Source of the DNA: Bugula neritina
Lineage: Eukaryota > Animalia > Bryozoa
Assembly: GCA_964035545.1 (NCBI GenBank)
Contig: OZ037773.1
Span: 1,703,751 to 1,767,750 of the forward strand
DNA: 64,000 nucleotides
Direction: 5' to 3'
Shown here: one piece after another, positions 1 to 53,760 of the stretch
How positions within the stretch are numbered: the first letter of the stretch is position 1
Layout: each line of letters opens with the position of its first letter
The notes under the pieces: generated by a model
Database searches by the model: none
Told to the model about the DNA's origin: nothing
Seen by the model: only the letters and a program-made list of their open reading frames with translations
Translations under genes and position numbers: made by a program

Positions 1-984
1 CAACACCCACATCTAATCAAAACTCACTGAAAAGATCAATTTTCACCAAGAATAATATATTATATCTGTTTATAGGCATGGCATGTAATTATGCAATAGA
101 ATATGTCGTAACTAACCCAGACGTAAGCATGTCAACCCATGTTTACCTGTCAACTGATAAAATTTTTTATCTGTAATTGATGATTTAGGCACACGACTAA
201 TCTCCCCGTGTAGGAAGTCCCAACATAAGCCCACTGACCACAAGGTTGTAAGCCCAAAAGTTAAATCCATAATATAATGGATGATTATACTTTCACCAAT
301 AATCATTTAGTAATAAGTCATATTTTGTGAAGGTTGGTAGCAGATGCAGCCTAGTATGGTGACCCTAAGCTTCATAGCAATGTAATACACAATATGTTCA
401 GTATTTTTAATTTGGAATCGTCATCATAATTGCTGGCAACTTGGAACTAGCTCAAAGTGTGTGTGATATTCTTATACCCATGACACATACAGTGAAAAAA
501 GCTTCAGAAGTTGAATAAAACAGTTTGATACACGCCTCTACATGCTCAGAGCAACTATAAAACTACGTTCATTGATGCGGATGCAAGCATTGCAATAGAT
601 ATACATGTATACATGCTCTCAGAAAAATTACGTCATCAGCTTTCTTCAATAACCTAGAAAATGTGTTTCTCACTCCATCTTCTACTTAGCCTTGGTTCTA
701 ACGTACACATGCATAAACTAACTTCTTGCAAAGTTGAAAGAGCTTAAAATTCTTTATATTATTTAGTTTATATGTCTTTGCTTGAAATCTCAGCCCATAC
801 TTCAAGGTACTATGCTACATATTATGATATATCACATTGCATTTTAATGCGCTATATTGCTTTCTAAGAGATACAGTGGAATTTATTTGTTGTTTGCAGT
901 AGTTCTACTGACTGGCTGTAAATACATATGAGGCTGAATGCTGATTGTGTGTACTGGCGATTCAACATTATAGCATTGTACAAT

Positions 985-1555: not shown

Positions 1556-1980
1556 AAGGTAAGTATACAAGGTAACTATGCAAGGTAAGTATACGAGGTA
1601 TGTCTACAAAGTGAGTATACAAGGTAAGTATACAAAGTAAATCTACAAGGTATGCATGTATACAAAGTAAGTATACAAAGTAAGTATACAAGGTAAGTAT
1701 ACAAAGTAAATCTACAAGGTATGCATGTATACAAAGTAAGTATACAAAGTAAGTATACAAGGTAAGTATACAAGGTAAGTATACAAGGTAAGTATACAAG
1801 GTAAGTATACAAGGTAAGTATACAAGGTAAGTATACAAGGTAAGTATACAAGGTAAGTATACAAGGTAAGTATACAAGGTAAGTATACAAGGTAAGTATA
1901 CAAGGTAAGTATACAAGGTAAGTATACGAGGTATGTATACAAAGTAAATCTACAAGGTAAGTATGCAAAGTAAGTATACA
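1556..1980. repeat. 13-bp minisatellite (CAAGGTAAGTATA)n
   Basis: About 30 tandem units, perfect from ~1758 to ~1927; explains the YTYLVYLPCILTL ORFs. Confidence 0.95.
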
Positions 1981-2554
1981 TGATAAGTAGGCCTCAAAAA
2001 TATTTAAAAAGTTGATGACAACATTTCAACATTATTGTAATATAATTTTTTTGTTATGAGCCATGCAGCTTTTTAAAAGTCATAGGTTTTGACAGGCATT
2101 CGCCGTTTTAAATTATGATTTTATATTATTTTGCTTATATTAAAATATTGACAGTTTATTTTATTATATTATTAAATAGAATATAATGTACAGCCCACAC
2201 TTGTTTATAACTTTGCAATGTTAGAGATTTAGATTTCTGAAACCTAGCTATCCCTCTACATGCATGCATGCATACCAACACCATCACCATGCGCTTAATT
2301 CTAATAGAATGTGATTGGTATAGCTGCATACTTTTTCCAGAAGAATTTAAAGGAAGTCTTGATGATCCTTTTTAGGGAAGTGGCACTACAAACTTGCAAA
2401 TCCCCGGAATCCAATGTGTGAATGTGTTAGTAAGTGAAATGGAAGTTGGTAATACCATGCTGTGACCCACATTACTTGGAGATTACCAGATGTAAAGGAC
2501 ACTAAAGACAATCTAATCATCTCCAGATTGCAGATTATATTCAGAGTCGGAGGG

Positions 2555-2622
2555 TATATAAGGGGAGAGTTGAGGAGAGATTTTCATATCATCTTCTAAC
2601 AGCCCAGAAGAATAATATCAAA
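2555..2622 (+). promoter_or_regulatory. TATA box and probable non-coding first exon of the TSR gene
   Basis: TATATAA at 2555-2561, Inr-like TCATATC ~30 nt downstream, donor AA|GTAAGT at 2623; the next acceptor (2997-2998) lies 1 nt before the ATG at 3000. Confidence 0.65.
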
Positions 2623-2999
2623 GTAAGTAGTTGAGTTTACATAATATATAGTTTATTTTGTGTAGTGAACTGGTAGTATGAGTAAAGACTTTGTTAAAAC
2701 CAGTGTTGACTTTAATAAATAACTGAATTTCATACAGTTGAAGTATTATACTTACTAATATTTTAAGAGTTATAAAATCTTACAAGTTATATGCTAATTT
2801 TTAGGTTTTATTTATTTGCTAACATTCACTGAAACTTTTTAAGGATTTTATCAGCAGCTTGGTTAAATAATTCATGTAACAGTAACAGTACCAGTTTTGC
2901 ATAGTTTGTAGAATTATATCGGGAAGTTATATTATGTTTTTAATAATTGATGAAAAATGATGGAAACATAGTATTAATACAAAGCTTTTGTTTTATAGA

Positions 3000-5900
3000 A
3001 TGGTGTCTCGCTCAGTTGTTCTGCTTTCTCTCGCTGCACTCATTGGTAAGTGACTAACTCACCCTGACATTAAACAAGTAACCTTCTGCAACATTTAACT
3101 TGAGCACGACTTTTGAAAGGTAGAGCATTGCTAAAATGACACATGCTTAATAATTTATTTTAGGAGTAACTTTAGCTGCTGGAAGCTATGGGAAACCAAA
3201 ACATGATGATGTAGAGGACATACCAGTAGACCATGATCCAGTTCCCCATAATCCGGATGGTAAGATTTATTTACTAATTTACTACCTAATTGCAATAATG
3301 AACAACTAGATAGTGCCTAAATGCCTACAAAATGAAAAAGTAAATCGTGAGATAGCTTTATTTAGCTGAATTGCCAAGGTTTTAGATTGCTGTTGTTCTT
3401 GAAACTCAAAATTCTGCAAAATCTGATGTTTTGCATTCACTGTTAAGCCCCCTCCCCTCAATTGTATATTTCTAGTAAAATTTTCTTTTTGGTATTTAAT
3501 CGATTTTTGTTGTTGTAAATTTTTACTAAAGAGATGCATTTAAAATAGAGTCCGTTAACAAAAAAGGCAGCAAAGTGAAAAGTATGCTAGTGTATGAAAT
3601 ATAATACTTTAAATAAATCCTAAGCTTACATGATACTGACTAACCAGTAGTGATATATCAGTGGTGTACTTGGCATGATATACAACTTAGTACAGATGAG
3701 GTTGTTGAGGTTGTAGCCACGGATGTTAAATAAACTGGATGTACAATACAAAGTCTTATTGTTGCCATAGAAACAACAATAACTAATGCAATGATTCGCT
3801 ATTTTACAGGTTTTAAGCTAGAAGGTAAATGGAGTTCCTGGAGCTCTTGGTCAAAGTGCAGCAAGACCTGTGATGGTGGATCCCAGAGTAGATCTAGAGT
3901 CTGCCAGAAACCAAAATACCTGAAATATGTTCACAACCGAGTTGTTCCATTCAAATGTAGCGGATCTAGTTCAGAGACCAGAGCATGCAACACACAGGGC
4001 TGTCCAGGCAAGTGAAATAGGCTACGGTGCCTCAGTTAACTGACACTGTATGAAATCTATTAATGGTAAAGTCAAGGGTTATGAAACCCCAAATGAGCAC
4101 TAGGCTTAGCCTAGTTCAATCTATAGTCAATTCTGGGTGTTTCATAGTCTCTAGTACATGAGCCAAAGTGATATAAATTTACTTTTAAGTCAAGCTGTAC
4201 AGTAAATGAGACAGGTGTTTCTAATTATGTAGTTGATGGTATGTGGACACAATGGAGCCAATGGGCAACATGCTGTGGAGGTAAACAACAGTCTAGAATG
4301 AGAACTTGTACCAACCCATCTCCTTCTAATGGTGGTGCTGATTGTGCTGGAGATGATAAGCAGAAAAGACCAGTCGGTAAGATTTTAGGATAAGCACTAT
4401 TTTTAGCAATCTTCCAAGTTTAGAAATAAAACAGTCTAAACATCCAATGCACCAAAAAATTACATTAGTCCTGAAATTTTCTTGATTATGAACAGTCGAT
4501 GGCATGTGGAGCCAGTGGAGCCAATGGGCAACATGTTGTGGAGGTAAACAACAATCTAGAATGAGAACCTGTACCAACCCATCTCCTTCCAATGGTGGTG
4601 CTGATTGTACTGGAGATGACAAGCAAAAAAGACCAATTGGTGAGAATCACAAAAACATTGGACACTGAAATAATTATTTGTAAAACTAATATCAAAGTAT
4701 ATGTCTTTGCAACACACGTGTTGATGCAGGGTTTTTAATTTCCTTAGTTGATGGTATGTGGAGCCAGTGGAGCCAATGGGCAACATGTTGTGGAGGTGAA
4801 CAACAATCTAGAATGAGAACCTGTACCAACCCATCTCCTTCCAATGGTGGTGCTGATTGTGTTGGAGATGACAAGCAAAAAAGACCAGTTGGTAAGAATT
4901 CCGATCAATTTTAAAGATTTATTTGTTTTTTTTAAAAAATTAACCTTTAAAAAATTATTATATGATGGTAAGTTTAATTTTGTTATTTTGATTTTAAAAT
5001 TTTTTTTTTACAGTCAACGGCATGTGGAGCCAGTGGAGCCAATGGGCAACTTGCTGTGGAGGTAAACAACAATCTAGAATGAGAACCTGTACCAACCCAT
5101 CTCCTTCCAACGGTGGTGCTGATTGTACTGGAGATGACAAGCAGAAAAGACCAATTGGTAAGCATCACAAAAAGATTTGACACTGAAATTATCATAAATA
5201 GAACTAGCATCAAAGTATTATGTTCTTGTAAAACAGAAAAATTAATATAGCTTTTTTAATTTCCTTAGTTGATGGTATGTGGAGCCAATGGAGCCAATGG
5301 GCAACATGTTGTGGAGGTAAACAACAATCTAGAATGAGAACCTGTACGAACCCAGCTCCTTCTAATGGTGGTGCTGATTGTACTGGAGATGATAAGCAAA
5401 AAAGACCAATTGGTGAGAATCACAAAATGGTTTGACACAGAAAATATTAATATTAATAGAACAAGTATCCAAGTTATTATACTCTTGCAAAATAGTATTG
5501 CTATAATTAATTTCTATTTCTTTAGTTGATGGCATGTGGAGTCAATGGGGCCAATGGGCAACTTGCTGTGGAGGTGAACAACAATCTAGAATGAGAACCT
5601 GTACAAACCCAGCTCCTTCCAATGGTGGTGCTGATTGTACTGGAGATGATAAGCAGAAAAGACCAGTTGGTGAGATTTTCAAGCAACTTTAAAACATTAT
5701 CTTGTGGTTTTAAAAAAACTCACTAAAAGTATTACATGATATCAAGTTTAGTTTTATCATTTTGGTTATTTTAACTTTTTGATAGTCAATGGTGTGTGGA
5801 CACAATGGAGCCAATGGGCAACATGTTGTGGAGGTGAACAACAATCTAGAATGAGAACTTGTACCAACCCAGCTCCCTCCAATGGTGGTGCTGATTGTGC

Positions 5901-7942
5901 CGGAGATGATAAGCAAAAAAGACCAGTTGGTGAGATTTTAGGACAAACACTATTTTATCAATCTTTTGAAAGTGATCAACAGTTCTAAAAATCCAATATA
6001 CTAACAAAGCGTAATAAAAACCTTCTTTTTTCTAATAGTCAATGGTATGTGGAGCCAATGGAGCCAATGGGCAACATGTTGTGGAGGTGAACAACAGTCT
6101 AGAATGAGAACCTGTACCAACCCATCTCCTTCCAACGGTGGTGCTGATTGTGCTGGAGATGACAAGCAGAAAAGACCAATTGGTGAGAATCACAAAAAGA
6201 TTTTATACTGAAATCATCATAAATAAAACTAGAATCAAAGTAATATTTTCTTGTAAAACAGAAAAATTAATATAGATTTTTTAATTTCCTTAGTTGATGG
6301 CATGTGGAGCCAATGGAGCCAATGGGCAACATGTTGTGGAGGTAAACAACAATCTAGAATGAGAACCTGTACCAACCCAGCTCCTTCTAATGGTGGTGCT
6401 GATTGTGCTGGAGATGATAAGCAGAAAAGACCAATTGGTAAGAATCACAAAACAATTTTACATAGAAATTATTATAAATAGAACTAGCATCAAAGTAATA
6501 TGTTCTTGTAAAACAGAAAAATTAACATAACTTTTTTAATTTCCTTAGTTGATGGTATGTGGAGCCAATGGAGCCAATGGGCAACATGCTGTGGAGGTAA
6601 ACAACAATCTAGAATGAGGACCTGCACCAACCCATCTCCTTCTAATGGTGGTGCTGATTGTGCTGGAGATGATAAGCAGAAAAGACCAATTGGTGAGAAT
6701 CACAAAATGGTTTGACGCAGAAAATATTATTATTAATAGAACATGTATCCAAGTTATTACTCTTGCAAAATAGTATTGCTATAATTAATTTCTATTTCTT
6801 TAGTTGATGGCATGTGGAGTCAATGGAGCCAATGGGCAACATGCTGTGGAGGTGAACAACAATCTAGAATGAGAACCTGTACCAACCCAGCCCCTTCTAA
6901 TGGTGGTGCTGATTGCGCTGGAGATGATAAACAGAAAAGACCAGTTGGTAAGAAATCAATAAAGTTTAAAGACTTATTTTGCACTTTTAGTATAAACTTT
7001 TCTAAATGCTTTACATGATACAAAGCTTACTTTGGTTGTTTTGACTTTTTAAATTTTTAAACAGTCAATGGTATGTGGAGCCAATGGAGCCCATGGGCAA
7101 CATGCTGTGGAGGTGAACAACAATCTAGAATGAGGACCTGTACCAACCCATCTCCTTCCAATGGTGGTGCTGATTGTGCTGGAGATGATAAGCAGAAAAG
7201 ACCAGTTGGTAAGTTATCTAAATGGTGATTAGCATAACTATTGAAAATTTTCCATATCTAAACAAATTTCTTTAGACAGTTGTTAACACTTATATTCATC
7301 ATTTCTCACAGTCAATGGAGTATGGTCCGAGTGGTCAAAGTATAGCTCTTGTTCCAAGACCTGTGGAGGAGGTATACAAACCCGTAAAAGGTTCTGCAAC
7401 AACCCTGCTCCATCTAATGACGGTAGTGATTGCCAAGGAGCTAGTTCTGAGTCCCAGACTTGCAAGAACTTCCCTTGCAAAGGTCAGTCACTTTGAACAG
7501 TATTACCGCTTTTCAAATGCTTGTGACATTTACACAGTGGCTCGAGCTTGATAGGCAATAATCCCATGACTTTTCTTGTTCACAGTTCATTCCTGGTCTA
7601 ACTGGACTCAATGGACAGACTGCTCAAAGCCATGCAATGGCACCAGATCCAGAAGCAGAACTTGTCTCTACTCTCCCAAAGTTCATGGAAAACACTTTTG
7701 TCAAGGCAAGAGTCATGAGAGAGCTCCTTGTAACCAAAGCAAACACTGTAAGTATTTATTGTAAGTTATTAGTATTGGTTTGGTGAGGAATACTTCAGCC
7801 ATCTATTTTACTGTTCTGTTGACACATGAGTTATCTTTCCTTTGCTGCTTGCAATAATTTTGATCAAATTTTTTCATAGGTACATGAACGTGGCTCAAAT
7901 TTGCATGTTTAAACTTTTGTAGGCAATGATGGCTACTACTAA
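3000..7942 (+). CDS. Secreted thrombospondin type-1 repeat protein, ~806 aa, 15 TSR-type modules (3 with six Cys, 12 truncated 4-Cys copies)
   Basis: Coding exons 3000-3045, 3164-3259, 3810-4007, twelve 144-nt exons (4233-4376, 4496-4639, 4748-4891, 5014-5157, 5269-5412, 5526-5669, 5786-5929, 6039-6182, 6294-6437, 6549-6692, 6804-6947, 7065-7208), 7312-7482, 7586-7747, 7923-7942. All introns are phase 1 and the total of 2421 nt is in frame. Signal peptide [20 protein letters not shown]; WxxWxxWxxC and RxRxC motifs; ends CNDGYY-stop; AATAAA at 8041. Confidence 0.92.
4233..7208 (+). repeat. Tandem exon-intron array, 12 units, period ~252-266 bp
   Basis: Invariant 144-nt exons separated by 108-122-nt introns that fall into about four recognisable sequence classes. 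Confidence 0.97.
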
Positions 7943-8798
7943 TCTGTGACTTCTCTAAAGATCTGTGGGATCTTCAACATTCACTAATGTTAAACGCTTG
8001 AGAATTTTGTTATATTCATAACTTTTTCTTTGTTGGTTTAAATAAAATATATTGTTGGCAACCATAACTTTCATCTTCTCTATTTGATTATGATGGTTCA
8101 TGCATAACAGCTCTAAGTGGGTTAAGAAGTTTATACTTAGTTCCATTATAATGACATTCATAAGTGATATTTACGCTCTCTCAAGTAGTAGTTAATGTTG
8201 GTATTGCACTAGTGTAGCATTTAGCCATTGAAAAACTTTAATGAAATGAATAGAGTTGTCTTCTCCATTATTAGACATGGTTTAAAGTGACATTGTATAA
8301 CATTTGTTACTAGAAAAACTTCTAGCTTGTCAGAATTCTGCTTGTAATTCGGACTGACAACTGTGCATGGAGTCACCCTTTGCACATGACTGTTTTAACT
8401 ACAATTATTTTCATCCTTACACTTGATACAGAATCTGTTTTTGGTGATTAATTAACTTTTGCTGTCATGATATTTTAAGATTTAAGGAGCAAGTTATGAT
8501 TTGCAAGTGAAACATCAACAAAGTTTATAGATAATGAAGCTTCTTATTTCTGGTTTGGTCAATGCACAAAATATTATATAAAATAGAATACCAAGAGAGA
8601 TGTTCAACATTAATGACAACGCATGCATGAAGTTGAGGTTATACTTTCAAAATTTCAAGTGAGAGGTGTAAACCCAACTTTAGAATTCGAGTGATTACAA
8701 AAATAATATAAATGATTTGCTATTATGAAGTTGTCTATAAAAAAAGCGTTTTTGAAAGATCTAAAATTTAAGGAGTGACACAGTTTGACCTATTGCAG

Positions 8799-11700
8799 CT
8801 AGTCTGAGTATTTCTCGCAGACAAAGTCAGCAATTCCACTGCAGATAAAGTCATCAAACCCATTGCCATGACTAGGGCCAAAGATCTGAAAACAGTTTCC
8901 AGTACCATCGGGTTGGTGAGCGTTGAAATAATTTGTGTTGACAGGAGAGCCATTGTCCCAGCGCCAGACACCCGTAAGCAGGTCCTTGCTTGCACCAACT
9001 ATGATGATCGAACTGCTCCACTCTACAATGAGTAGCGTCTTTTGTACTTGGTAAGTAAGATGGCACTTTTCTTTAGCCAAAAGACTCATTGTCTATGTAA
9101 CTATGTGACTATGTAACTATGTGACTATGTGACTATGTGACTATGTGACTTTGTGACTATGTGACTATGGGACTATGTGACTATGTGACTATGTGACTAT
9201 GTAAATATGTAACTAGGTAATTTCAGCTTTAAAATATTTGGTGACTTAGGTTAATATGAGTTGTTAGTTTGCGATTAAAGCAAACAAATTTTCAGTTAGA
9301 GATTATCTTAACAGCATAGTTATACTTTGTTTTTCCATTTTAGCCATCTGAATTATAAAAAGACATGTTATGAACAAGGTGATTGAGCACTCAATAAATA
9401 ATCATTGCATTTGTTTGAACAAGTAAGCTGTTTGTTGCAGTTGAGAGAAATATTCAGGAAATTACGCATTGGGTATTAGAATGATCTTTCAATATTCCAT
9501 TACAACTGACGCACACTAATCTGAAAAAAGTAAGACTTTATAAACAATAATGCGATAATTTTTTGAGTACACTGTTATTAGCAGTATTTTGTTTAAAGTC
9601 ACGTAGGAAATCCATAAACACCATGGAGTCTGAAAATCTCTACCGGCAGGTATAAAATTACAAAATATTTGCACTGCAGTCTTCTAAAGTTGTCAATTAT
9701 ACCTGGGCTTGTGGTACGTAGGTGGATGAACCACTCTCTTGACATATCTGTGTCGAATACGGCAAGAGAAGAGTGGAACTGCTGGCAGTAAGCTCGCGCT
9801 TCTGCAGTGTTTCTCCCCATAAACAACCTCATGCAGCTTTTATTAATAGGATTCCGTATCCACCCAACTTCACAAGGTACTGAAGCTAAAAGGTAAACAA
9901 TGATTTGAGTTGCGGTGGCTTACAACTAGCATTCACTAGGCTTCCATGCTTGGAATGGACTCTCATGCGGGTTACATAAAATAAAAACTGCAGGTTCCTA
10001 TGGATAATCTGTACAAATTTAAGAAAAAAGTAATTCAAACTTTTTCAGCCCTTTTATTTTACTGCCAAAAATGCAATCCTGTTGCTGCATCATAAAGTAA
10101 ACAAGCATGGCTAATTTTGAGTCTGTGTGAATAATTAACAGCATTTTTATGTCTCTCATTTTGCTTCAGTATTTGCTAAATTTAGTTTATTAGTTACACA
10201 AAATTTAAGCTGCAATTTTTTAAAGCTAAAAAAAGCATAAAATAATAAAATCTTAGATGAAGTTTATGGTGCATAAAGCAAAAGCTCACTAAAAGTTTTA
10301 GAAATAAAAATATTTGTCAATTTATTTTAGGCTCTGGAATATTTTTAGTTGCAGAAAAAATATATAGATCAAATGTGGTTAGTGATTATATAAAATATAG
10401 TAGCTAAGACAAATAAAATAATTACATTAACCTTGTTATAAATTGAACTGTATCTTAGAAGTATGTCATAGCTTATGGGAGTTGCTGATAATTATTTTTT
10501 CCCATTATATAACCATTTGCCATCAAATGATCTGTTCCCATACTCTGAATTATGTGAATGCCCACCTTCATTCTAACGAACCATTCTAATCGATTTTTGC
10601 GCTTTCAAAAACACTGTTTCCATGCATTAAATAAGAAAGCTTGGCAGATAATGCTAAGCTACGACTTCTTCATGTTTTAATAATGAAGTAGCATAATCAA
10701 TTACAGCAAGTGTGTTTACCTTATGTACATACTACAAATATTACAACAGCATGTTCTACAATTTATATTACACATGACTACATACCACATTATACACTAC
10801 AAATTGGTGACGTTACGCTGTATAGTACTAGACTACATACTGTATACTATATTATACTACATACTACACTACACTACACTACACTACATTATACTATACC
10901 ATATAATGTACTATATAATATACAGTACAACACACTTTATATTACACTATACCACATAATATAATATATACTATGCAATATACTGTACAATATACTACAC
11001 AATATGATATACAATATACTACACTACACCATATATACTATACTATATACTACACTATACTATATAACATACAGCATACCCCACTTGTTATTACACTATA
11101 CCATATATATACTATACTGTACAATATACTATACTATATATACTATACAATATACTACACTATACTATATTATATACTATACTATATTATACTACACTAT
11201 ACTGTCCTATACACTATAATATATTATACTACACTATACTGTCCTATACACTATAATATATTACACTATACTGCACTGTGTGCATTGACAAAGCTTTTAA
11301 ACATAGAATCTGTTTGTTGAGCTTCAAACTACACTTTACCTTTTTCATACAGTGTAGGGGGAGACAACATCACAGGAAGACTCGTGCTTTTTGGGAATGA
11401 CTCGTACTTGGACAGAAAGCAGACTGTTGAGTCAAAGGCATAGGATTGGCAGCTCAAGTCTACAAGGCATTGCAGAGAGCAGACCTCTAAAGAAGAGGCA
11501 GCGAGTGAGGTCACCTGAATCATTACTTTGCCCTCTTTCTTTGAGCTGAGTGCAGCAGAGCCGGCTGAAACTTTCTGCAGATGGATATCGAAAGTATGAC
11601 AAGTAGTAGTGATAAGAACTACTGCTGTTTGCTAATATAGAAGGCAAGTGTATTTTGGGAAGGCAACGTGTATTTTGGGACAACTAGTTAAAATGAGTAT

Positions 11701-13849: not shown

Positions 13850-14372
13850 ATCTGTCTGTATGATAAATGGGGAATTTGTCCTTATCATAAAAAGAGAATT
13901 CCTCCATATCATAGAAGAGAATTCCTTTGTATCATAAAAGGAGGATCCCTCCATATCATAATTGGGGAATTCATCTATATCATAGAAGGGAACTCCTTTG
14001 TATCATAAAAGAAGATTCCTCTGCATCATAGGAAGAGAATCTCTCTAGATCAAAGACTGGAAATCTTTCTGCATCATAGAAGGAGGATCTCCTTGTATCA
14101 TAGAAGGGAGATTCCTCTGTATTATGGAAGGAAGATCCTCTTGTATCGTAGAAGGGAGATTCCTCTGTATTATAGAAGGAGGATCCCCTTGTATCCTAGA
14201 AGGGAGATTCCTCTGTATTATAGAAGGAGGATCCCCTTGTATCATAGAAGGGAGATTCCTCTGTATTATGGAAGGAAGATCCCCTTGTATCATAGAAGGG
14301 AGATTCCTCTGTATTATGGAAGGAAGATCCCCTTGTATCACAGAAGGGAGATTCTTCTGTATCGTAAAGAGG
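13850..14372. repeat. 24-bp minisatellite with 48-bp higher-order dimer
   Basis: Alternating TGTATCATAGAAGGGAGATTCCTC and TGTATTATGGAAGGAAGATCCCCT units, decaying leftwards. Confidence 0.9.
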
Positions 14373-14944
14373 GGGTAGACCCAGGTTGCAAAACGAACCT
14401 GTAAATTATTGAACAGCAACATCATTGGCTGAAGTATATGCCGTCGTTATACATGTTGGAGCCAATACACAATGTTGCATACTTTTAATCAATGAAGAAA
14501 AAACTTTATTTCAAAAGTAGAATGTCCTATGTTTTCACATATATCTAATATAAATTAATGAATATTATAAACCATGTTTCACTCCATACAAAGAATAAAT
14601 TGAATTAATTTACTGTTTGCTTACATTTTTCACAGCAGACTACACATCAAATGTCATCTAGAGCTAGAGCAGGAAAGATAAGATAACTCCAGAGAAGATG
14701 ACTACTGGGCCTGGTAAAACTATTTGCATAGAGGGCATGACTCTCAGTTTTGATGTCGGAGCTAATAATGTTAGAGCAGCACGTGCATTGTATTATCAAC
14801 AAATTAACTCCCTCCCACAAAGCACTGCCTCTCCTACAATAGGTGGCTAGGCAACCGTGTCAAATACGCACTCATTTGTGTAATAAATCAATAATGGGTT
14901 TATAAACAGAGTGTTATAAGCTATATAGAACTGCTACCCTGACA

Positions 14945-15206
14945 CTACTATAACTTCTACTACTATAACTTCTACTACTATAACTTCTACTACTAGAACT
15001 TCTACTACTATAACTTCCACTACTATAACTTCTACTACTATAACTTCTACTACTATAACTTCTACTACTAGAACTTCTACTATTACAACTTCTACTACTA
15101 TAACTTCTACTACTACAACTTCTACTATTATAACTTCCACTACTATAACTTCTACTACTAGAACTTCTACTACTATAACTTCTACTACTATAACTTCTAC
15201 TACTAC
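14945..15206 (+). repeat. 15-bp repeat (ATAACTTCTACTACT)n, open as (ITSTT)n; candidate mucin exon
   Basis: About 17 units; the frame NCYPDTT(ITSTT)n is open from an AG at 14927-14928 to a stop at 15210-15212. Confidence 0.85.
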
Positions 15207-15274
15207 ACTGTAAAAGTGACGAGCATGGACACTAGATTTGTTGTGACTGTATACATTATTATATCAGGTATAAT

Positions 15275-16280
15275 ATATAGTATGGTATATGGTATAGTAA
15301 AGTATATAATATAGTATAGTATAGTATATAGTACAGTGTAGTATAGTATATAGTATAGTTTAAAGTATAGTATATGTATAGTATAACATAGCATAGCATA
15401 GTATAGCATAGTATAGTATAGTATAGCATAGTATAGTATAGTATAGTATAGTATAGTATAGTATAGTATAGTATAGTATAGTATAGTATAGTATAGTATA
15501 GTATAGTATAGTAGAGTATAGTATAGTATAGTATAGTATAGTATAGTATAGTATAGTATAGTATAGTATAGTATAGTATAGTATAGTATAGTATAGTATA
15601 GTATAGTATAGTATATAGTATAGTATGTAGTATAGTAAAGTATATAATATAGTATAGTATAGTATAGTATAGTATAGTATAGTATAGTATAGTATAGTAT
15701 AGTATAGTATAGTATAGTAGAGTATAGTATAGTATAGTATAGTATAGTATAGTATAGTATAGTATAGTATAGTATAGTATAGTATAGTATAGTATATAGT
15801 ATAGTATGTAGTATAGTATGTAGTATAGTAAAGTATATAATATAGTATAGTATAGTATAGTATAGTATAGTATAGTATAGTATAGTATAGTATAGTATAG
15901 TAGAGTATAGTATAGTATAGTATAGTATAGTATAGTATAGTATAGTATAGTATAGTATAGTATAGTATAGTATAGTATAGTATAGTATAGTATAGTATAG
16001 TATATAGTATAGTATGTAGTATAGTAAAGTATATAATATAGTATAGTATAGTATAGTATAGTATAGTATAGTATAGTATAGTATAGTATAGTATAGTATA
16101 GTATAGTATAGTATAGTATAGTATAGTATAGTATAGTATAGTAGGTATAGTATAGTATAGTATAGCATAGCATAGCATAGTATAGTATAGTATAGTATAG
16201 TATAGTATAGTATAGTATAGTATAGTATAGTATAGTATAGTATAGTATAGTATAGTATAGTAGGTATAGTATAGTACAGT
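15275..16280. repeat. (TAGTA)n microsatellite, ~1 kb, with repeated interruptions
   Basis: Pentamer array; the TGTAGTATAGTAAAGTATATAA interruption recurs, which indicates block duplications. Confidence 0.97.
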
Positions 16281-16424
16281 GTAGCTTATTGTCTAAAGTT
16301 GAAGCCAGGATATCACCACATGCTGCTTTGCTCCACGTTAAAGTGAAACACAATTTAATTATACACATATATACCTATATACAAACATATATTATATTAT
16401 ACAAATATACATTTTCATCTGTAG

Positions 16425-22525: not shown

Positions 22526-25500
22526 ATGGCAGATGCTGGTGAAGACATATTCATGAAACATTTCAAAGCATTGAAGAGAAAGTGTCCGCCTGCTGATCTC
22601 ACATCTGTCCTTGACCTAGATAACCCTGGGTCTCTTACTAGTGAGGTGTGTTTTGTCTTAGATAGCTTTAATTTTCTTACTAGTGAGGTTTGTTTTGTTC
22701 CAGATAGCCCTGGTTATTTTACCAATAGTTATTGTTGACCTTATTTTACCAACTGAACTGAAAGACTATTGTACAGGGAGCAGCTGTGGTCTAGGGGTTA
22801 GAGCGTTTGCCTAGTAAACACGAGGTCATGGGTTCGAGCCCAAAGGCCATTGGTAATGTTAGGAAGAGCATCCAGTCATAATTGCTCCTGTGCCTCATTT
22901 AAATAAGTCCTTAGCCTGCTTTCCATCATGGGTTTTCTCACAGGGATAGCGACTATAAACTTGCGTGAGTTTTTGTTGTTGAAAGACTATTGTACATTGT
23001 TGTTTATCATTGCAGTTGGGTCATTTTACTTAATTTAGTACACATTGGAAATCTCCAGTTTTTAGCTGTTTTTTTAAATTTAGCTGCTAATGAACATGGG
23101 TTTTTGCCCAAAGCTATTAAAATATCAATAAATACACTAAATAATCAAGGTTCTTCCTAATTTTGATTGATTTCTCCTGTTTCTTTTCTATTTATTTAGC
23201 TAATTTAGATTGCGGACTGTTACGAAGAAAACCGTAACGGTCCGCAATCGAAATTAGCTGAATAATTAGGAAACAACATGAGAAATCAAGCAAGATTAAA
23301 AAGAACCTAATTATTTAGGTGTATTTATTGATATTTTACTAGTTTTGGGCAAAAACCCATGTTCATTAGCAGCTAAATTGTAGAAAATAGCTAAAAACTG
23401 GAGATTTCCAGTGTTTATTAAATTAGGTAAAATGATCCAATTTAATATTGGTTACGGATGAGCTTTACTTGCCCGCCACATGTCTTATATTGTGTAAAAT
23501 TAAGAGGTTCAACTTACCGCTTTTGAAACTCACAAAAATGAATAAATTATTGAAATATATAAGTTTAAGTTGTTTTCTGCAGATATCACAAATCACACCT
23601 AAGGGGGTATCTGCAGACTCCATGTTTGGTTTACTTCCTGTCAGTGAGTGGAGGGCATATGAGCTGCTAGATGTGCCGGGTGCCATTATCATTAGGAACC
23701 CATTCACTGAGAGGCTACGCAGGTACTTTGTGTGCAGATGTCTCTCAGACTATCCTCGTCTGCCCAACATATCCAACCTCGACACATCACCCAGAATCTA
23801 CCCCGAGATCTGGCAGGCTGGCTGCCTCCACAACTCTGATATAAGGTTAAGTAAGCTAGGGCTATGGTGTTGTTTATTCTCGTTTCTTCCCAAATTATTC
23901 ACATTTCAGTATATACCTGTTAGCCTAAATTCTGTAATTTTGATACATACAAGTTTGATGGAGTGTTTGCGCGGCGTCTTTTTAACAGCAATGTTGTGCT
24001 TTTATACAGGGCTAGAAAGTATCTCCATAAGCTGAGATGGGTCACTCTGGGATATCATTATGACTGGACTAAGAAGGTGAGTTATCAACAGCTGAACCAA
24101 CCAGGGCTGTCCAACAGGCAGCCCCCAGGACTGGATGTGGTCCTCAGCCTACATTTAGGTGGGCCTCAAAGGAATAGCAAATAAATTTTTTTTGCACACA
24201 TACATGAATTAGAGTAAAAAAACCACTGTGTTTTTATATACATACTACAAAGCATACAGCATGCAGTAGTGATTGGGACTGCATTGTGTAATGATTCATA
24301 GCGAGTTGGAATAAAGTTATTTGAAACTTACTAATGCTGTGGCCCCCAGCCCAAGCTAAATTTACAATGAGGCCCTCGCCATGAAATATTCTATTTCAGT
24401 TGCCTTCGCTCTAAAATGGTTAGACACCCCCGAGCTCAACTATTACACCTCATGTCACATATCTGGTTTAACTCTCAATATTTCTTGAAAAAAATCGTTA
24501 ACTAAAAGTTGTCTTCTCTCTCAGGTTTACTCACAGGAAAGCTGTAATGATTTCCCTCAAGATCTCTCAGCCACCACGCAGTACATTGTGCGAGCTGTTT
24601 TAGGTGAAACCTGTGCTTTCAAAGCTGAGGCAGCCATTGTGAACTTCTATCATCTAGACTCGTCACTTTCTGGTCACACTGACCATAGTGAGTTTGACCT
24701 TGCAGCGCCACTCATTTCAGTCAGGTATTTGCATTGTAAAATGTTTATAGTAGGCATATATTTTGCTAGTGTGATAATACATATTTCTGTGTTTATAGTA
24801 CATAGTAATGTGTTTATAGTATGTAGTAATGTGCTATAGTATGTAGTAATGTGCTATAGTATGTAGTAATGTGCTATAGTATATAGTAATGTGCTTATAG
24901 TATATTGTAATGTGTTTATAGTATGTAGTAATGTGCTATAGTATGTAGTAATGTGCTTATAGTATATAGTAATGTGCTTATAGTATATAGTAATGTGTTT
25001 ATAGTATATTGTAATGTGCTTATAGTATGCATTATATGAGTCCATATTTTTCTGATTTACCTTCAGCTTTGGCCTGCCCTGCGTTTTCATGATTGGTGGA
25101 CAGACAAAGACCAAGGTCCCACAAGCCCTATATTTGAGAGATGGGGACGTTGTCATTATGTCCGGAAAAGCCCGCATGTCATATCATGCTGTGCCAAAAG
25201 TTTTACCAAAGAACTTTTTCTCTGCAGCTGATAATTCAGATACTTCATCACCTGTTGACAATATTACAATGACTTCTACAGTTAGTCCAAAGTGTAATGA
25301 TGAATGTAGCAAAAGATATCACTCTGAGGAATTTACAGAGCATTCCTTTACCAAGAAAGTTAAATATGATGCGGACACAAGCTGCTTCACTCAGCTAATA
25401 GACTGTGTGCATGACATTGAGTTCTGGAAACCCTATGAGATGTACCTACATGAGTCCCGTATTAATCTAAATGTCCGTCAGTTGTTTGAACCTGGTAAGC

Positions 25501-25574
25501 AGGCTAAGGATTATTGCTGGCCAACAACCGATCCAGCATTTAATTTTGAACAAATTCAGCATAAGAACAGTTGA
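22526..25574 (+). CDS. ALKBH1: AlkB homolog 1, Fe(II)/2-oxoglutarate nucleic-acid dioxygenase
   Basis: Exons 22526-22645, 23583-23845, 24010-24076, 24525-24724, 25067-25574 are in phase. Motifs KLRWVTLGYHYDW, AEAAIVNFY, GHTDHSE (HxD), GDVVIMSG.AR.SYHAVP, RINLNVRQ. Confidence 0.95.
22776..22979 (+). mobile_element. tRNA-derived SINE, copy 2, with 17-bp TSD
   Basis: A box TGGTCTAGGGG, B box GGTTCGAGCCC, AGT anticodon-like loop, (TTG)n tail; TGAAAGACTATTGTACA at 22759-22775 and 22980-22996. Confidence 0.93.
23016..23440. mobile_element. Foldback/palindromic MITE-like element in ALKBH1 intron 1
   Basis: Two ~205-bp imperfect inverted arms (e.g. TTTAGCTGCTAATGAACATGGGTTTTTGCCCAAA and TTTGGGCAAAAACCCATGTTCATTAGCAGCTAAA) meeting at ~23225-23232. 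Confidence 0.85.
24102..24432. mobile_element. hAT-type MITE remnant in ALKBH1 intron 3
   Basis: CAGGGCTGTCCAAC left end and degenerate GTTAGACACCCCCG right end; internal GGGCC/GGCCC motifs; TSD not recognisable. Confidence 0.6.
24790..25030. repeat. 20-21-bp minisatellite (ATAGTATGTAGTAATGTGCT)n
   Basis: About 11 tandem units in ALKBH1 intron 4. Confidence 0.9.
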
Positions 25575-37652: not shown

Positions 37653-39993
37653 ATGTCAAATTCTCCGTATCCTAAGCAAACTAAGGGTCAAAGAAGCAAG
37701 ACCACTGGGTCTCAGTGTTATGCATACAATTGCCACAACTACCAGTACAGCAGTTACAGTAAAGACAAAAAAAATCTCTTTTCACAAGTAAGTGGAGGGC
37801 TTTAGTTACAACAATAAGTAATAGTAATGCATCAACTAGCGTAACAGTAGGCCTAATGGTTGTGGTAACGGTGCTGCTGCCTACTACTAGTACTACTAGT
37901 AGTACTAGTACTAGAGTAGTAGTACTCTACTTCTACTAGTACTGGTAATACTAATACTCTAATGGCTAAGCCTAATGCCATACTTACAGTATCAGTATGA
38001 TACTACTACTATTACTAGCCTACTGCTAGTGTTACTGCTACTAGTAGAGCACTAGTACTACAGCTGCTAGTAGTACTAATACTACTACTACTACCAGTAC
38101 AGGTACTCAGTACTAGTAGTAGTAACTTACTCATAAATTGTTATTATAATTCGAGTATCAGTATGAGAATGAATAGTACTATTACTAATAGTATTATTAT
38201 GACTAAAAATAACAGTAACTACACAATGTGAAAGTCAAAGTGTGAGTGACTCACTCTGAATATCTACTCATATTAATGTCACTATTATTATTGCTAACAA
38301 CTTTATTATGTTGATGTTATTTACAGCAAGCTTATTATTTTCAAAGCATTATATTATATAGGCACTTAGGCAATGCAATTATAATTGTGTCATCTACTCA
38401 GGTGTCTCTTGCTACCCAGTTGTTGTCAGCGAGCTGATCATCCTGAATAGTCGATCAGCAATAGCTAAAGGCTACAAGCAGCCTTCACATCTAAAAGGTA
38501 TCAGTGTCATCACTCCTTTTCTGAAAGATACACGATAATATTTGCTAGGCCTAAAGAATAATGAAGAGATACCTCTGTACAAGCCCAAAAGGTAAATTTC
38601 CTATCAACAAAGAAAGTGTTGCTTATATTTAAGATCTAATATGTGCCTGTCCCTATTTGTGTTATTTACAGACATGTTTGTATTACTGGACTTGTACGTG
38701 CCATTGGACACAGTATTTGGATTGGTGGAAAAACTGTTGGTGCCTAAAATGCTCGACTATCTGCTAATGTATAAATTTTCGCAAGACCATTTAGAGCTTT
38801 TCTTCAATGCAGTTCGCCGTTGTGGTATGCTACAGCTCGGAACAGCTATGCATGAAGCCCAGTATGCATGCACTTATGTTAACATGTTCATTATTTCTTC
38901 TCTTACTCTCTTATCTCTTTCCTTCAGGTGTTCGGTTTTTCACTTTGCTTTGATAGGTGCAACTAAGATGGTCGGTTGGCCCAACTGTGTTGCAAAGTGA
39001 ATTTTTTGCATGAGCTTAGTGGTTAAAATGCATGCAACATGAAGTTTGTTAACTTTTGAAGACCAAGAGACAAAGATAATGAATTTTCAAAAAATTCCAA
39101 AACTGTGGTGTCAAAGCAATTGTGCATTTTTAAAATTAAATGACTTTTTTAGCTTAATTGCATGCAAGGTTTTGCTTGTGTTCTAAAAAACATCATTTTT
39201 TTCTGGGTAAACATAATCCAATCTTTATTTGTGAACAGGCAATTGATGTCCAAGCATTTTTTTAAAGTTGTCTATCTAATATCTGTTTTAGGTGGATGGA
39301 ATAATAACCCATCTGTAACTGGCTTTCAGTCTATCTTTAGAAAATTGGTGACCCGATGTGGTGTACTCCAGGCAACTCAGGAAATTCTAAGACATTAGAT
39401 AACACAACTGCTATTTTCGCTTCAACTAGCTATATTCCACCGTTTTCTCAGAAAGATAATGCGGATTCATGATAAGTTGAAACCTGCTGAAAAAGTAAGG
39501 GTTTTAGCTGGCCCTGTTTTGGGTAATGTTGTCTACATCTCTGGGTGGGTTGTCCGAAAAGCACTAAGAAAAGTAACATGTCTAGAGTGCAGGCAAGCTC
39601 TAGTGAACAAGGAGTGGTGCAGTCTCAAGTATGGTGAGCTCAAAAAACTATTGCATGTTGAAAACAATGGTGGGCTTACTATACCTTCAGATGGAGTTAT
39701 TACCACTTGTTTATGCACTCACAAACACCTAAAAGGCCAAAAGTTCATGAAATTACTTCAGCTACAAATAGATGTGAAGCAAGAAATTGGTAAATATGAC
39801 ATTTGGAATTGCTCAACATTCCATGGAAACATCATTAAGCATTGAAAATCATCATTTCTCCCCTTCAAATTTACTCATTGAAGTATATTATGACTTATTC
39901 CAGCACCACATTGCTAAACTAACAAATATTGCTATGCACTAACTAAATTTCAGGCAATGTAGCAACAAAAGTGTACCGTTTAGAGGCCAGTAA
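37653..39993 (+). mobile_element. P-element/THAP9-type transposase remnant with introns
   Basis: THAP start CYAYNC; YLLMYKFSQDHLELFFNAVRRCG|GWNNNPS..FQSIFRKL; VYISGWVVRK..CLECRQAL; GGLTIPS. Large internal deletion and frameshifts. Confidence 0.88.
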
Positions 39994-41562: not shown

Positions 41563-44030
41563 GTGATTCTAGTTTTTTTCTTTATGTCATGTAACATTAC
41601 TGTTCCAGAGTATCACACGCTGCTTCTGCATATGCAATTCTGTTTCCACATACAAGGTGAGTAAATTATAATTATAGGCAAAAAATTTAAATATTTTGAA
41701 TCATAGTTAATCAGAAATATCTTTGCTGTATATCAACTCACAAGTTTAACATTTTCCACAACAGCAACTCAAAATGTGTTAAAGTAACCTGCATAAGCTT
41801 GAGAAGAAAACACTTAGGATTTGTGAAAAAACTTAAAATTTCTCCTTTGATAGCTCGAGGGGTAAAATTGACCCAAGTTCGAGCGGGTAATATGGAACAA
41901 TGGTTGATATTACCCCAACTTTAGGTATCCTATCTGTCAGGTTATTATATATTTTTGAGTCATTAAATGTAGAAATAAACATAATTTAAGACACCAACAA
42001 AGTATTATTTCATTTTGAAACCTGCATGTATTTACTCTGTTTTGAAGGTTTTAAAAAAGCCAAGAAATTCTCCTTGGCTGGCCTGAAAGCCAATCCAGCC
42101 AAGTGTGCTACGTTGAATATTAAGGTGTTATGCGGTAAGTGGGTGTGTGATGACAGACCATTCCTTGAGATAGCTGGCACAAAGGTGACTGCGCTGAGTG
42201 TCACTGACACTTACAAGTATCTTGGTGTGCAGGTAGGCTCAATGAATGTAGGGAGTAACCCCTCAAAGAGCTTGGAGACAGCAGTGAAGAAATTGACAAA
42301 AGCCCCACTTAAACCGCAGCAAAGGTTGTTTTTATTAAGGACCTTCGTAATTCCAAAATTCTACCATGCACTCGTTTTGTCACCTCCGACCGGAAAGGTG
42401 CTGACTCACCTTGACTACATTGTGAGATCAGAATGTAAAAAATGGCTAAAGGTACATATACATTTTGCTAGCGCAAATTTCTATGCACCAGTTAGCGCAG
42501 GAGGGTTAGGAATCCCATCGTTTAGGTATACGATTCGGAGGTTACGATTCGAAAGGGTTGCTAGGTTAACAGATTATGAGGATCCGCTAGTCGAGGCTGT
42601 CATCGATGCGAAAGAGCTAGCACCGCCCAGGATTTTGGGAAAAACCATAGGAAGTAAAAAAGAAGAGGAAAGCCTATGGAAAGCAAAGATGTTAGAAGCC
42701 ACCGATGGAAAGGGACTAGCAGAACACGAAGAAGTCCACAAGCGCATAGATGGACAAGAGAACCAACAAAGATATTAACAGGTAGAGACTTTATCAGAAT
42801 CAACCATCTTAGATACAAAACGCTAGTCACGAACTCGTTGAGGAACAGGATCAATAAAAGCGTTTCAGTGTACTGCCCGGTATGTGTTAATACCCCACAT
42901 ACGTTAAGCCACATGCTACAAACTTGCCCGAGATCTCATGGCCCACGGATACATAGACACAACAGCATAGTTGATTACATTTGTAAAAGGCTGGAAATGA
43001 AAGGGTATGGGGTGCTTTCGGAGCCGCATATCAGGGACGCGTCAGGGCTACTCAAGCCAGACATCGTGTACTGGCACGAAGCCTCGGAAGAGGTGAAAGT
43101 GCTGGACATAGCTATCGTCTCCGACCATGTGGCTCTGGAGGTACCCTATAATGGAAAAGTGGAAAAGTATAACGTCGAGAAAGTAAGGAAATACGCCAGA
43201 GATGTAAGCCAGAAAGAGATGGTGTCGATAGGAGGTTTCATAATAAACTGGAGAGGCGCAATATCGAAGCGAAGCGTGAAATTCTGTAAAGATTTCATTA
43301 GTACGAGAGAACTCCCAATATTGTCATTGAGGACAATGCAATATGGGGTTTACATATACGATATGTGGCACAAGTCGACGGTAATGTTGAATGAAATCGA
43401 GGAAGTGGACTCGTAGGACAGGTTGCATTGTCAAACATTTTTCTAGAATTTTTCAGTCATCATACCTGAAAGACAGGACGGAATATATCCCCTATTAATT
43501 AAATTTAACTTAACCCTTCAGCCATGGGAGACCACCAAATGGTTTAATGAACCTGTTGACTTACCTCGGATAGAGGAAAGACAGGCAAGTGAGAGATCCA
43601 AATTTACTGAAAATATTAAAACTGGACTAAGCCAACGTGAATCTGCTGCAAAATATAGGATTCTACGCACTACTTTTCTTAGGTATGCAGCTCGAAGTTG
43701 AGAGATAAAAAATCAGCACTAGGTCAGAAGGCAGCATTTACCGCAAAAGAGAAATCAAACCTGACAGAATATATCCTAGACTGTTATAAAACATTTTTAT
43801 GGGCTAGGCTTACAAAAAAACCAGAGAGCTAGCATATAGCTACGCAATCAATTTACAAAAAGAAACAATTCCTCAACCTTGGCGTGCGAAGAAAATGGTA
43901 GACAAAGATTGGCTAGAAAGCTCAATGGTGCGGTAAGTCTTCGAACCTTAGAAGCGACCAAACTAGGCAGAGCTTTCAACAGAATGACAATTTCAGAATC
44001 TTTCCATAACCTGGAACATGTCCTTAAGCC
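41507..44030 (+). mobile_element. pogo-like (HTH-psq/DDE_1) DNA transposon remnant interrupted by the R2-like insertion
   Basis: Terminal motif GTAGGGGAGAGTGGGG with GGGGTAA subterminal repeats; 43600-44030 reads GLSQRESAAKYRI.RTT, LTEYIL, DKDWL, EATKLGRAFNR..FHNLEHVL. Confidence 0.65.
42060..43416 (+). mobile_element. R2-like non-LTR retrotransposon, 3' half (RT C-terminus, CCHC knuckle, restriction-like endonuclease), one frameshift
   Basis: GLKANPAKC, YKYLGV, APLKPQQRLFLLR, GGLGIP, CPVC..TLSHMLQTC, RHNSIV, EPHI..LKPDIV..LDIAIV..KVEKY. A 1-bp deletion near 42737 relative to the paralog at ~27905 joins the two ORFs. Confidence 0.92.
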
Positions 44031-52569: not shown

Positions 52570-53760
52570 CTCAAAGAGTTGTTCTGCAAAACTGCTTTAG
52601 CGAAGAATTGTTGGTTACCTCTGGTGTACCCCAAGGATCAGTCATTGGCCCCAAACTCTTTTTATTGTATATTAACGACCTGCCTGATTGCCTCTCCTGT
52701 AAAGTTAGTTTATTTGCAGATGATACCATCATTTTTACATCTGTAAATAACTCAAATGACTCTGAAAGTTTTGAAAGAGACATAAACAACATATATGAAT
52801 GGTCTATAAAATGGGGCATGTGTTTCAATATTAAAAAGACCCAACTAATGATCTTCTCTAAAAGACCAAATTTTAATGGTACCTACACTTTCACAGGAGA
52901 AAAAGTTAGTGAGGTTGAAGAGGCCAAATATCTAGGCGTCATTATACAAAATAATCTAAAGTTTGCAAACATATAGAGCAAAAAGTTAAAAAGGCCTTTC
53001 AGATCCTGGGGTTGATAAGGCGAACACTATCAAACTCGCCGCGTAAAACAAAATTACTTGCTTTCACTTCCTTATGCCGCCCCATACTTGAGTATGAATG
53101 CCAGGTATTTGACCCTTATACACAAAAACTTGTAAATAAAATCGAGGGAGTTCAAAATCTGGCTATTCGATTTATAGGAAACTTAAAAGGCCGTACTGAC
53201 AGTGTGTCAGAGACCCGATAAAAATTAGGCCTCAGCACTCTGGAAGTCCGTCGTAGGGAGTCGAGAGTGAAGCTCTACAAGAAAATGGTGGGTAGCCCAA
53301 CAGAGATTTTCACTAAATTCTTGGAAGAAAACACCAATCTTGTTAATACTAATGTAACCACGTGTTTTCAGTCACAGAGATTGGTAACATCTCTCTTCAA
53401 ATCCTGGCCTATTTTATCATAGCTTCCTCCTTAGAACAATCAGGGACACTAGAATTGAAATCGGTGTGGAGCAGACTGCTCACTTTTGTTCCCATTGAGC
53501 GTCCCTACCATTGCTTTCTTTTAATAGACCTCTACATCAATACATTTTATTTTGCTTTATGCAGACTGCTCACTTTTGTTCCCATTGAGCGTCCCTACCA
53601 TTGCTTTCTTTTAATAGACCTCTATATGAATACATTTTATTTTGCTCTATACATTAAAAAAATTAGAAAAAAAATTGCCATTATAGTAACTCGTTGATCT
53701 CTGAGGCTTGCACGATGGTCCTACGGGATCCGCTGCAGGATCTACTTCATACAGATACAG
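52570..53760 (+). mobile_element. 5'-truncated CR1/L2-group LINE with 9-bp TSD
   Basis: SGVPQGSVIGPKLFLLYINDL, FADD, KYLGV, RPILEY; (GATACA)n tail; ATACAAGAA at 52561-52569 and 53761-53769; 90-bp tandem duplication in the 3' UTR (53471-53650). Confidence 0.92.

Follow-up and report, generated by a model that had tools for sequence, protein, structure and literature searches.

Twelve shortened thrombospondin type 1 repeats with adjacent cysteines in a gene of the bryozoan Bugula neritina

Few extracellular modules are as common as the thrombospondin type 1 repeat (TSR), whose fold is by definition taken to include three cystine layers. The six cysteines of group-1 TSRs are paired C1-C5, C2-C6 and C3-C4. 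In the TSR, three C layers (top, middle and bottom) bracket a stack of Trp and Arg residues (10.1101/779553). Here we describe a gene of Bugula neritina with 12 tandem TSR-type units of only four cysteines each, which we call mini-TSRs. The gene lies in a stretch of 64,000 nucleotides (nt) of genomic DNA (assembly GCA_964035545.1, contig OZ037773.1, positions 1,703,751 to 1,767,750 of the forward strand), which is referred to below as the window and numbered from its first letter. Group-1 TSRs such as TSR2 and TSR3 of TSP-1 (1LSL, 7YYK, 3R6B) have in common with the mini-TSR the WxxWxxW motif, the RxR motif, the spacing from C3 to C4 and the core 'TCTNPxPxxGGxxCxG', but, unlike it, they have three residues between C1 and C2, the CxxS/TC motif, C5 and C6, and a linker from one repeat to the next.

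The array, its gene and its cysteine pattern

A tandem array at 4230-7213 was detected by Tandem Repeats Finder with a period of 255, 11.6 copies and a score of 2731, and a six-frame and motif scan returned 12 in-frame plus-strand open reading frame (ORF) pieces with the motif WxxWxxWxxCC. The exon borders delimit the same span, and the placement of 12 units at 4233-7208 in a first-pass annotation of the window is exact. By motif scan and splice borders, mini-TSR units 1 to 12 are located, all on the plus strand, at 4233-4376, 4496-4639, 4748-4891, 5014-5157, 5269-5412, 5526-5669, 5786-5929, 6039-6182, 6294-6437, 6549-6692, 6804-6947 and 7065-7208, respectively; unit 8 was used as the query for searches and folds. 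All 12 exons are 144 nt long and in phase 1, with a polypyrimidine-AG before and GT(A/G)AG after, and the Val that opens the next unit is encoded across the joint by the split codon G|TT. Phase-1 symmetric exons are typical of TSR modules and are also found in the mini-TSR array. The units are on average 92.7% identical in amino acids (aa) and 92.5% identical in nucleotides in pairwise comparison, and the spliced units match the 48-aa consensus given in the first-pass annotation, with a few additional single substitutions (M4V, S6T, S9G and Q10P). A chance origin of this 12-unit array is impossible.

The three units that were scanned against Pfam matched TSP_1 (PF00090) with 24.9 bits (unit 1), 26.2 bits (unit 2) and 27.8 bits (unit 12), above the gathering threshold of 21.6, in matches that extend over positions 3-42 of the 49-position profile. 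The best solved relative in a phmmer search of the PDB was human TSP-1 TSR3 (7YYK/1LSL; E of about 1e-17), and the alignment has a 3-residue gap exactly between the two cysteines. A 3-residue gap between C1 and C2 is also seen when MAFFT is used to align the unit with 60 canonical TSRs. In both alignments the unit ends at the C5 column, in which its last residue lies in the MAFFT alignment. The mini-TSR has 4 cysteines versus the canonical six: C14 and C15 are contiguous at the place of C1 and C2, while C26 and C38 fill the C3 and C4 columns of the 60 canonical TSRs and of TSP-1, and the columns of C5 and C6 are empty. Both alignments bear out the earlier statement that C1 and C2 are adjacent and C5 and C6 missing, and the Trp/Arg ladder and C3-C4 were rightly described as kept, since WxxWxxW, RxR and the C3/C4 residues are invariant. 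With these three residues lost, the CxxS/TC site of O-fucosylation is gone from all 12 units. The POFUT2 consensus C-x-x-S/T-C-x-x-G is limited to two of the flanking TSRs (protein positions 64 and 703), in agreement with the loss of the fucosylation site that had been proposed. Candidate C-mannosylation motifs (WxxW) occur as two overlapping copies per unit and 29 times in the whole protein.

A model made with AlphaFold2 (AF2) from an alignment that included canonical TSRs had a predicted local distance difference test score (pLDDT) of 79.8. In a Foldseek search with this model, all top matches were TSRs (C8 alpha, UNC5, TSP-1, properdin and ADAMTS13), with template modelling (TM) scores of 0.65-0.78 and a probability of 1.0; for a domain as short as 48 residues, it is no surprise that the E-values (0.006-0.02) are weak. 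Judged by these alignments, the mini-TSR is a lineage-specific derivative of the group-1 TSR in which the Trp-Arg ladder and the C3-C4 positions have been kept.

The gene as modelled (3000-7764, plus strand) has 17 coding exons with an open frame of 2418 nt, corresponding to 805 aa, and all of its introns are in phase 1. The order in the protein is a signal peptide (by eye), one canonical TSR, the 12 mini-TSRs and two canonical TSRs. The first coding exon (3000-3045) has the ATG, a signal-peptide-like N terminus and a phase-1 donor, and the second (3164-3259) completes the signal peptide and adds a short N-terminal stretch rich in His, Asp and Pro. It is followed by a canonical six-cysteine TSR at 3810-4007 (CSKTCDGG ... 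CNTQGCP; 40.2 bits with TSP_1). Downstream of the array are a second canonical six-cysteine TSR at 7312-7482 (CSKTCGGG...CKNFPCK) and the last one at 7586-7764 (CSKPC...CNQSKHC; 34.3 bits with TSP_1), which includes the stop codon and gives KYLL as the end of the protein. The repeats directly bordering the array are indeed canonical, as had been claimed, with CSKTC...CNTQGCP at 3810-4007 and CSKTCGGG...CKNFPC at 7312-7482. On the same strand, a putative TATA box (gtatataagg) with a non-coding first exon that ends in a GTAAGT donor (2550-2623) and an AATAAA about 280 nt past the stop (8041-8046), likely the polyadenylation signal, were read from the sequence only. The mature protein has a mass of about 86 kDa, a pI of 8.8, 66 Cys and 44 Trp. 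Beyond the putative signal peptide, TSRs are the sole modules in the sequence of the gene model, and there is no hydrophobic stretch. The product is predicted to be a secreted, mildly basic, rod-like protein of 15 TSR-type modules, the signal peptide being judged by eye.

Of the canonical repeats, the TSR at 7312-7482 reads closest to the mini-unit. The difference in length between the two is 27 nt and is made up of a 9-nt loss (SKT) and 18 nt from an earlier donor of the same phase. The exon of the mini-unit ends at the position of C5, by which the C5/C6 tail is lost and the next unit is joined without a linker. This state could plausibly have arisen through a cryptic donor that lay at the C5 codon or beside it, but the idea is speculative: because no remnant of the CNTxxCP tail was seen in read-through translations of the introns, it stays a guess. 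A 9-nt deletion plus an exon of the same phase that ends earlier would be a simple route to domain miniaturisation.

Transcription, selection and genomic setting

Contigs of three small RNA-type runs (three studies) were compared with those of one DNA-type run over 3700-7800. The joints 4007>4233, 6437>6549, 6692>6804 and 7482>7586 were found in RNA-type runs and none of them in the DNA-type run, whose contigs cross the exon-intron borders. The joint 4007>4233, which was present in three RNA-type runs, removes the intron after the first canonical TSR (4008-4232), a GC-AG intron with the donor CCAG|GCAAGT. The joints 6437>6549 and 6692>6804 are of the GT..AG type and connect unit 9 to unit 10 and unit 10 to unit 11, and 7482>7586 connects the two canonical TSRs behind the array. 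Towards the 5' end, RNA contigs run from the 3810 exon into the exon at 3164-3259 (loose end 3809; match 3229-3258). With the predicted joints present in RNA-type runs, the possibility, named beforehand, that the exons are not transcribed does not apply. The same holds for the possibility that extra micro-exons supply the missing cysteines: no micro-exons were found between units in the RNA contigs, and the letters between joints are unit-start variants of 1-5 nt (e.g., TCAAC).

The contig pile-up on the array stretch amounted to 1,900-4,800 per RNA run, and all exon bins have depth. In a bin that is nearly all intron 1, the depth was about 45 in run X2 and 0.35-0.58 in runs X3 and X5, versus about 1e5 for bins in exons. 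The pile-up is in line with a very abundant message, contig depth being a measure that cannot rank genes. Joints between non-neighbouring units (6437>6804 and 4007>6294) and one backward joint (7207>5268) were also observed; they are attributed to the near-identical unit ends, which give such joints in short contigs. One contig of the DNA-type run joins 4403>6292. Skipping and reordering joints may reflect repeat ambiguity, exon skipping or copy-number alleles. The number of contigs that span the whole array was zero in both the RNA-type and the DNA-type runs.

Over all pairs of units (Nei-Gojobori), the proportion of synonymous differences (pS) was 0.235 and that of nonsynonymous differences (pN) was 0.033, giving a pN/pS of 0.14. 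The exons are 92% identical, versus 57% on average for the introns; some intron pairs reach 87-97% (i5/i10; i4/i8/i9). The mini-TSR units are under purifying selection. C14, C15, C26 and C38 are invariant in 31 distinct intact units, which come from the window and from loci in Joint Genome Institute (JGI) contigs and represent two related bugulid bryozoan genomes. The codon of C14 varies in these 31 units (TGT in 7, TGC in 24) despite the invariant Cys. Likewise, 29 aligned units have W5, W8, W11, R22 and R24 without exception. Pseudo-exons, chance repeats and prokaryotic ORFs were considered as candidates and ruled out by the splice signals, the phase, pN/pS and the RNA joints.

The intron classes of the array follow the order c-a-b-a-a-b and then c-a-a-a-b. 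Since they repeat in blocks, re-duplication of multi-unit blocks is indicated, and the array may have grown by unequal crossing-over of 255-bp units of exon plus intron. The JGI contigs L001-L007 have the same gene architecture; their identity to the window is about 82% across exons plus introns and 88% in one flanking exon of L001. The window would then come from a bugulid bryozoan that is related to, but distinct from, the host of the JGI metagenomes. With the same flanks, the unit number in these contigs is 5 (L001) or at least 6 (L004, L005 and L007). L001 (1-7328, JGI 3300003318) carries a second gene of the family, also seen in L002, that is without the middle canonical TSR. The 3' end of L001 matches window positions 1-433; therefore, the L001 gene would be a second gene a few kb upstream, and the array would sit in a tandem pair of paralogues that differ in unit number. 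One unit with a QQ insertion and one frameshifted unit in L001/L002 may both be assembly errors.

Elsewhere in the window, the TSR gene is followed closely on its downstream side by a gene of opposite orientation, to which an exon at 8799-9089 (minus strand) belongs; the translation of this exon matches Pfam Lectin_C with 22.9 bits and corresponds to the C-terminal half of a C-type lectin domain. An ORF or exon at 25089-25574 (plus strand) has the C-terminal domain of a 2-oxoglutarate-Fe(II) (2OG-Fe(II)) oxygenase of the AlkB-like type (PF13532, 37 bits). Remnants of mobile elements at 38641-39845, 42026-43416 and 52608-52976 (plus strand) comprise a TNP-like RNase H C-terminal piece, two long ORFs without a Pfam match and a reverse-transcriptase fragment (RVT_1, 59.5 bits). 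Dense micro- and minisatellites at 979-1989, 10821-11279, 13872-14362 and 14944-16284, which include TATAG in some 200 copies (15276-16284) and a 48-bp minisatellite (13907-14362), give rise to long spurious Tyr/Leu-rich ORFs.

Fate of the adjacent cysteines

With a confidence that falls somewhat short of even, we favour the view that C14-C15 is oxidised to a vicinal disulfide that is a self-contained stand-in for the bottom cystine layers, and that the protein is an abundant extracellular structural or matrix component. From the topology of the TSR, C26-C38 would be the usual top disulfide, and the A-B turn at the bottom, the usual site of C1-C5 and C2-C6, would hold C14-C15. Since there is no linker, the CC turn would directly abut the next unit. 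A vicinal disulfide would then be a minimal bottom layer of the Cys-Trp-Arg stack and would allow the domain to shrink to 48 aa and to stack on the next unit. Adjacency of C1 and C2 as such appears to be tolerated in TSRs, as judged from 21 six-cysteine examples in other proteins (see below). Secreted proteins rarely leave the endoplasmic reticulum (ER) with many free thiols.

The following points weigh against this reading. Vicinal disulfides are strained and rare. When AF2 was given the mini-TSR family alone as the alignment, the pLDDT was 45 and no TSR fold was obtained, and therefore the fold call rests on homology and not on an independent prediction. Finally, a chain with 12 domain junctions, each exposing a CC pair, would suit a cross-linking polymer just as well. 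Whichever state the pair takes, a selected and heavily transcribed TSR in which two of the three disulfides have been dropped, with one Cys lost from each, is a natural experiment on how far the Trp-Arg ladder needs covalent bracing, and the mini-TSR is a candidate case of a vicinal disulfide or of a built-in cross-link site. If the CC pair forms only a vicinal disulfide, this would be a neat structural footnote.

The main alternative, possible but in our estimate doubtful, is a role of the CC pairs as nodes of intermolecular cross-links (up to 24 disulfides, or bonds to partner proteins) in an insoluble cuticle, adhesive or skeletal-organic matrix. C5 and C6, the natural partners, are gone while C14 and C15 are invariant under purifying selection, and the regular spacing of one CC pair per 48 aa without a linker would suit such a role, as would the very heavy RNA signal on the exons, which is as for a bulk structural product, and the membership of the gene in a tandem paralogue family. 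TSR-rich proteins do occur in the adhesive mucus of limpets (PMC7333891). The window protein, however, has few Tyr (6) and no obvious partner motif. In a more far-reaching form, the mini-TSR would be a purpose-built cross-linking module, with an exposed, redox-active CC at each junction and 12 pairs (24 cysteines) on a stiff Trp-Arg rod, and a switch after secretion to intermolecular disulfides, thiol-quinone links or metal links would cure the cuticle or the larval glue; we regard this, too, as rather unlikely. Were the CC pairs to cross-link, they would represent a new type of biomaterial module, and a TSR-based structural polymer has no described counterpart. The composition of bryozoan cuticles and adhesives is poorly known, and this protein is an abundant secreted candidate.

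It seems improbable to us that C14 and C15 escape oxidation and, as free dithiols, bind metal, buffer redox changes or couple to quinones, along the lines of the up to 24 free thiols considered in the first-pass annotation. The invariance of the two cysteines is compatible with this state as well, and thiol-rich secreted adhesive proteins exist, e.g., mussel mfp-6. But a secretory protein that exposes 24 thiols would normally either have them oxidised or be retained by ER quality control, and the units offer no metal-ligand context such as a His beside the CC. Lower still is the probability that we give to a non-canonical pairing, in which C14/C15 would bond with C26/C38 of the same or the next unit and the fold would not be that of a classical TSR. 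The failure of AF2 to recover the TSR fold without canonical TSRs in the alignment would be in line with it, as would the missing linker, by which the CC turn of unit n would adjoin the C3-C4 end of unit n+1 according to TSR topology (10.1101/779553); against it stand the strong homology to group-1 TSRs, the presence of the whole W/R ladder and the C3...C4 spacing, and bonds between units would leave the first and the last unit unbalanced. Finally, that the array is decaying, mis-assembled or mostly made of unused cassette exons, so that the 12-unit protein does not exist as modelled, is very improbable: the many joints between non-neighbours, the DNA contig and the lack of an array-spanning contig described above would agree with it, but near-identical unit ends produce such joints in short contigs, 12 of 12 exons are intact, in phase, under purifying selection and covered by depth, and the same architecture is found in the related genome.

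Comparison with known systems

When 1.84 billion representatives were searched exhaustively with phmmer, there were 5,022 matches, of which the best 150 were examined. These 150 are long canonical arrays with identities of up to 64%, periods of 54-66 aa and six cysteines per repeat. Ten ORF fragments of a single exon each, from two Bugula-associated JGI metagenomes, were the only close relatives of the unit among database proteins in word searches with one unit and a longer ORF (candidates of 43-136 aa). Since only single-exon fragments were found and no listed match exceeds 64% identity, there is no reference for the multi-unit protein.

The spacing of C1 and C2 was surveyed with a regular expression in those 150 proteins and 109 relatives of the protein P0079 (259 multi-TSR proteins in total, a sample biased towards long arrays). 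In the 1,865 TSRs that were found in this way, the spacing was 3 residues in 1,815 and 0 in 21 (1.1%). All 21 of these CC-type TSRs keep the two tail cysteines C5 and C6, and 18 of the 21 lie in four unannotated proteins (P0079, P0151, P0242 and P0263). A local profile search of related multi-TSR proteins with the mini-TSR unit yielded 3,362 domains with 2,942 intervals between neighbouring domains, of which 2,417 have six cysteines and 136 have four; about a dozen of the latter are halves of six-cysteine repeats that were split by the search. A CC pair together with the loss of both C5 and C6 was absent from the four-cysteine intervals listed and from all 21 CC-type units. Precedents exist for the single parts of the pattern; for their combination, none was found in what was searched. 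From the regular-expression, profile and phmmer surveys, a CC-type, four-cysteine repeat is not an already common, annotated TSR subtype. The word 'redesigned', which the first-pass annotation had used for the domain, goes too far for the parts, which are not unique, six-cysteine CC TSRs and four-cysteine TSRs both being known; new is the combination alone. In the literature, nothing was found on TSRs with vicinal cysteines, on bryozoan TSR proteins or on Bugula in connection with spondin or coadhesin, nor did proteome or in situ data turn up that bear on cuticle, adhesive or skeletal material.

The top sequence matches are SCO-spondin-like, coadhesin-like and hemicentin-like secreted proteins of invertebrates, e.g., Mytilus XP_076085385 (P0011); the proteins of limpet adhesive mucus (PMC7333891) are of this kind as well. 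They resemble the mini-TSR array in consisting almost wholly of tandem TSRs with the core 'RTCTNPxPxNGGxxC' and an identity of 45-64% per repeat but differ from it in that all repeats have six cysteines, with periods of 54-66 aa. The best match to the AF2 model is the C-terminal TSR of C8 alpha (8B0F_E; other components of the membrane attack complex, 3OJY and 7NYC), with a TM score of 0.78 over 48 columns and 44% identity. This TSR aligns without the 3-residue gap (query 2-43 versus chain 509-549); unlike the mini-TSR, however, it is a single domain in a pore-forming MACPF protein, is not part of a tandem array and has no CC pair according to the alignment ranges, and there is no functional relation. 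For the proposed vicinal bond, an analogue is the VWF A2 domain, in which two adjacent Cys, with small residues after them, form an eight-membered disulfide ring that stabilises a small extracellular domain (PMC6207679, PMC5814862). It is a functional analogue only, with an unrelated fold and a single site, and the vicinal bond in the mini-TSR is hypothetical.

The closest relatives with regard to the CC pair are the six-cysteine CC-type arrays P0079, P0151 and P0242 (Logan) and P0263 (ENA), which share with the mini-TSR the adjacent C1 and C2, the register x-x-x-C-C-x-G and the tandem arrangement. Single CC-type units with six cysteines also occur in an oyster ADAMTS-like protein (P0015) and in P0269. 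In contrast to the mini-TSR, the CC pairs of the six-cysteine arrays are fully partnered, and the periods are 52-57 aa. The identity of these arrays to the bryozoan unit is only 37-48%, and therefore the CC state probably arose independently. P0079 and P0151 are encoded by eukaryotic transcripts with 50-56% GC (L008 and L009, Logan SRR22103517), and both end in a hydrophobic tail, which may be a glycosylphosphatidylinositol (GPI) signal or a transmembrane segment. The six-cysteine CC TSR subtype itself appears to be undescribed.

With regard to the number of cysteines, the nearest relatives are tandem four-cysteine TSRs of a leech, Helobdella robusta (T1FB46/XP_009023467; P0027, with 21 matched stretches), and of a clam, Mactra antiquata (KAL4226070; P0024). 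Both proteins are annotated but uncharacterised. The leech repeats have lost C1 and C5 and the clam repeats C2 and one tail cysteine, which means that in both arrays, with repeats that are still of full length (51-64 aa), both members of one disulfide are lost and no orphan cysteine is left behind. In the bryozoan mini-TSR, by contrast, the two lost cysteines come from two different disulfides.

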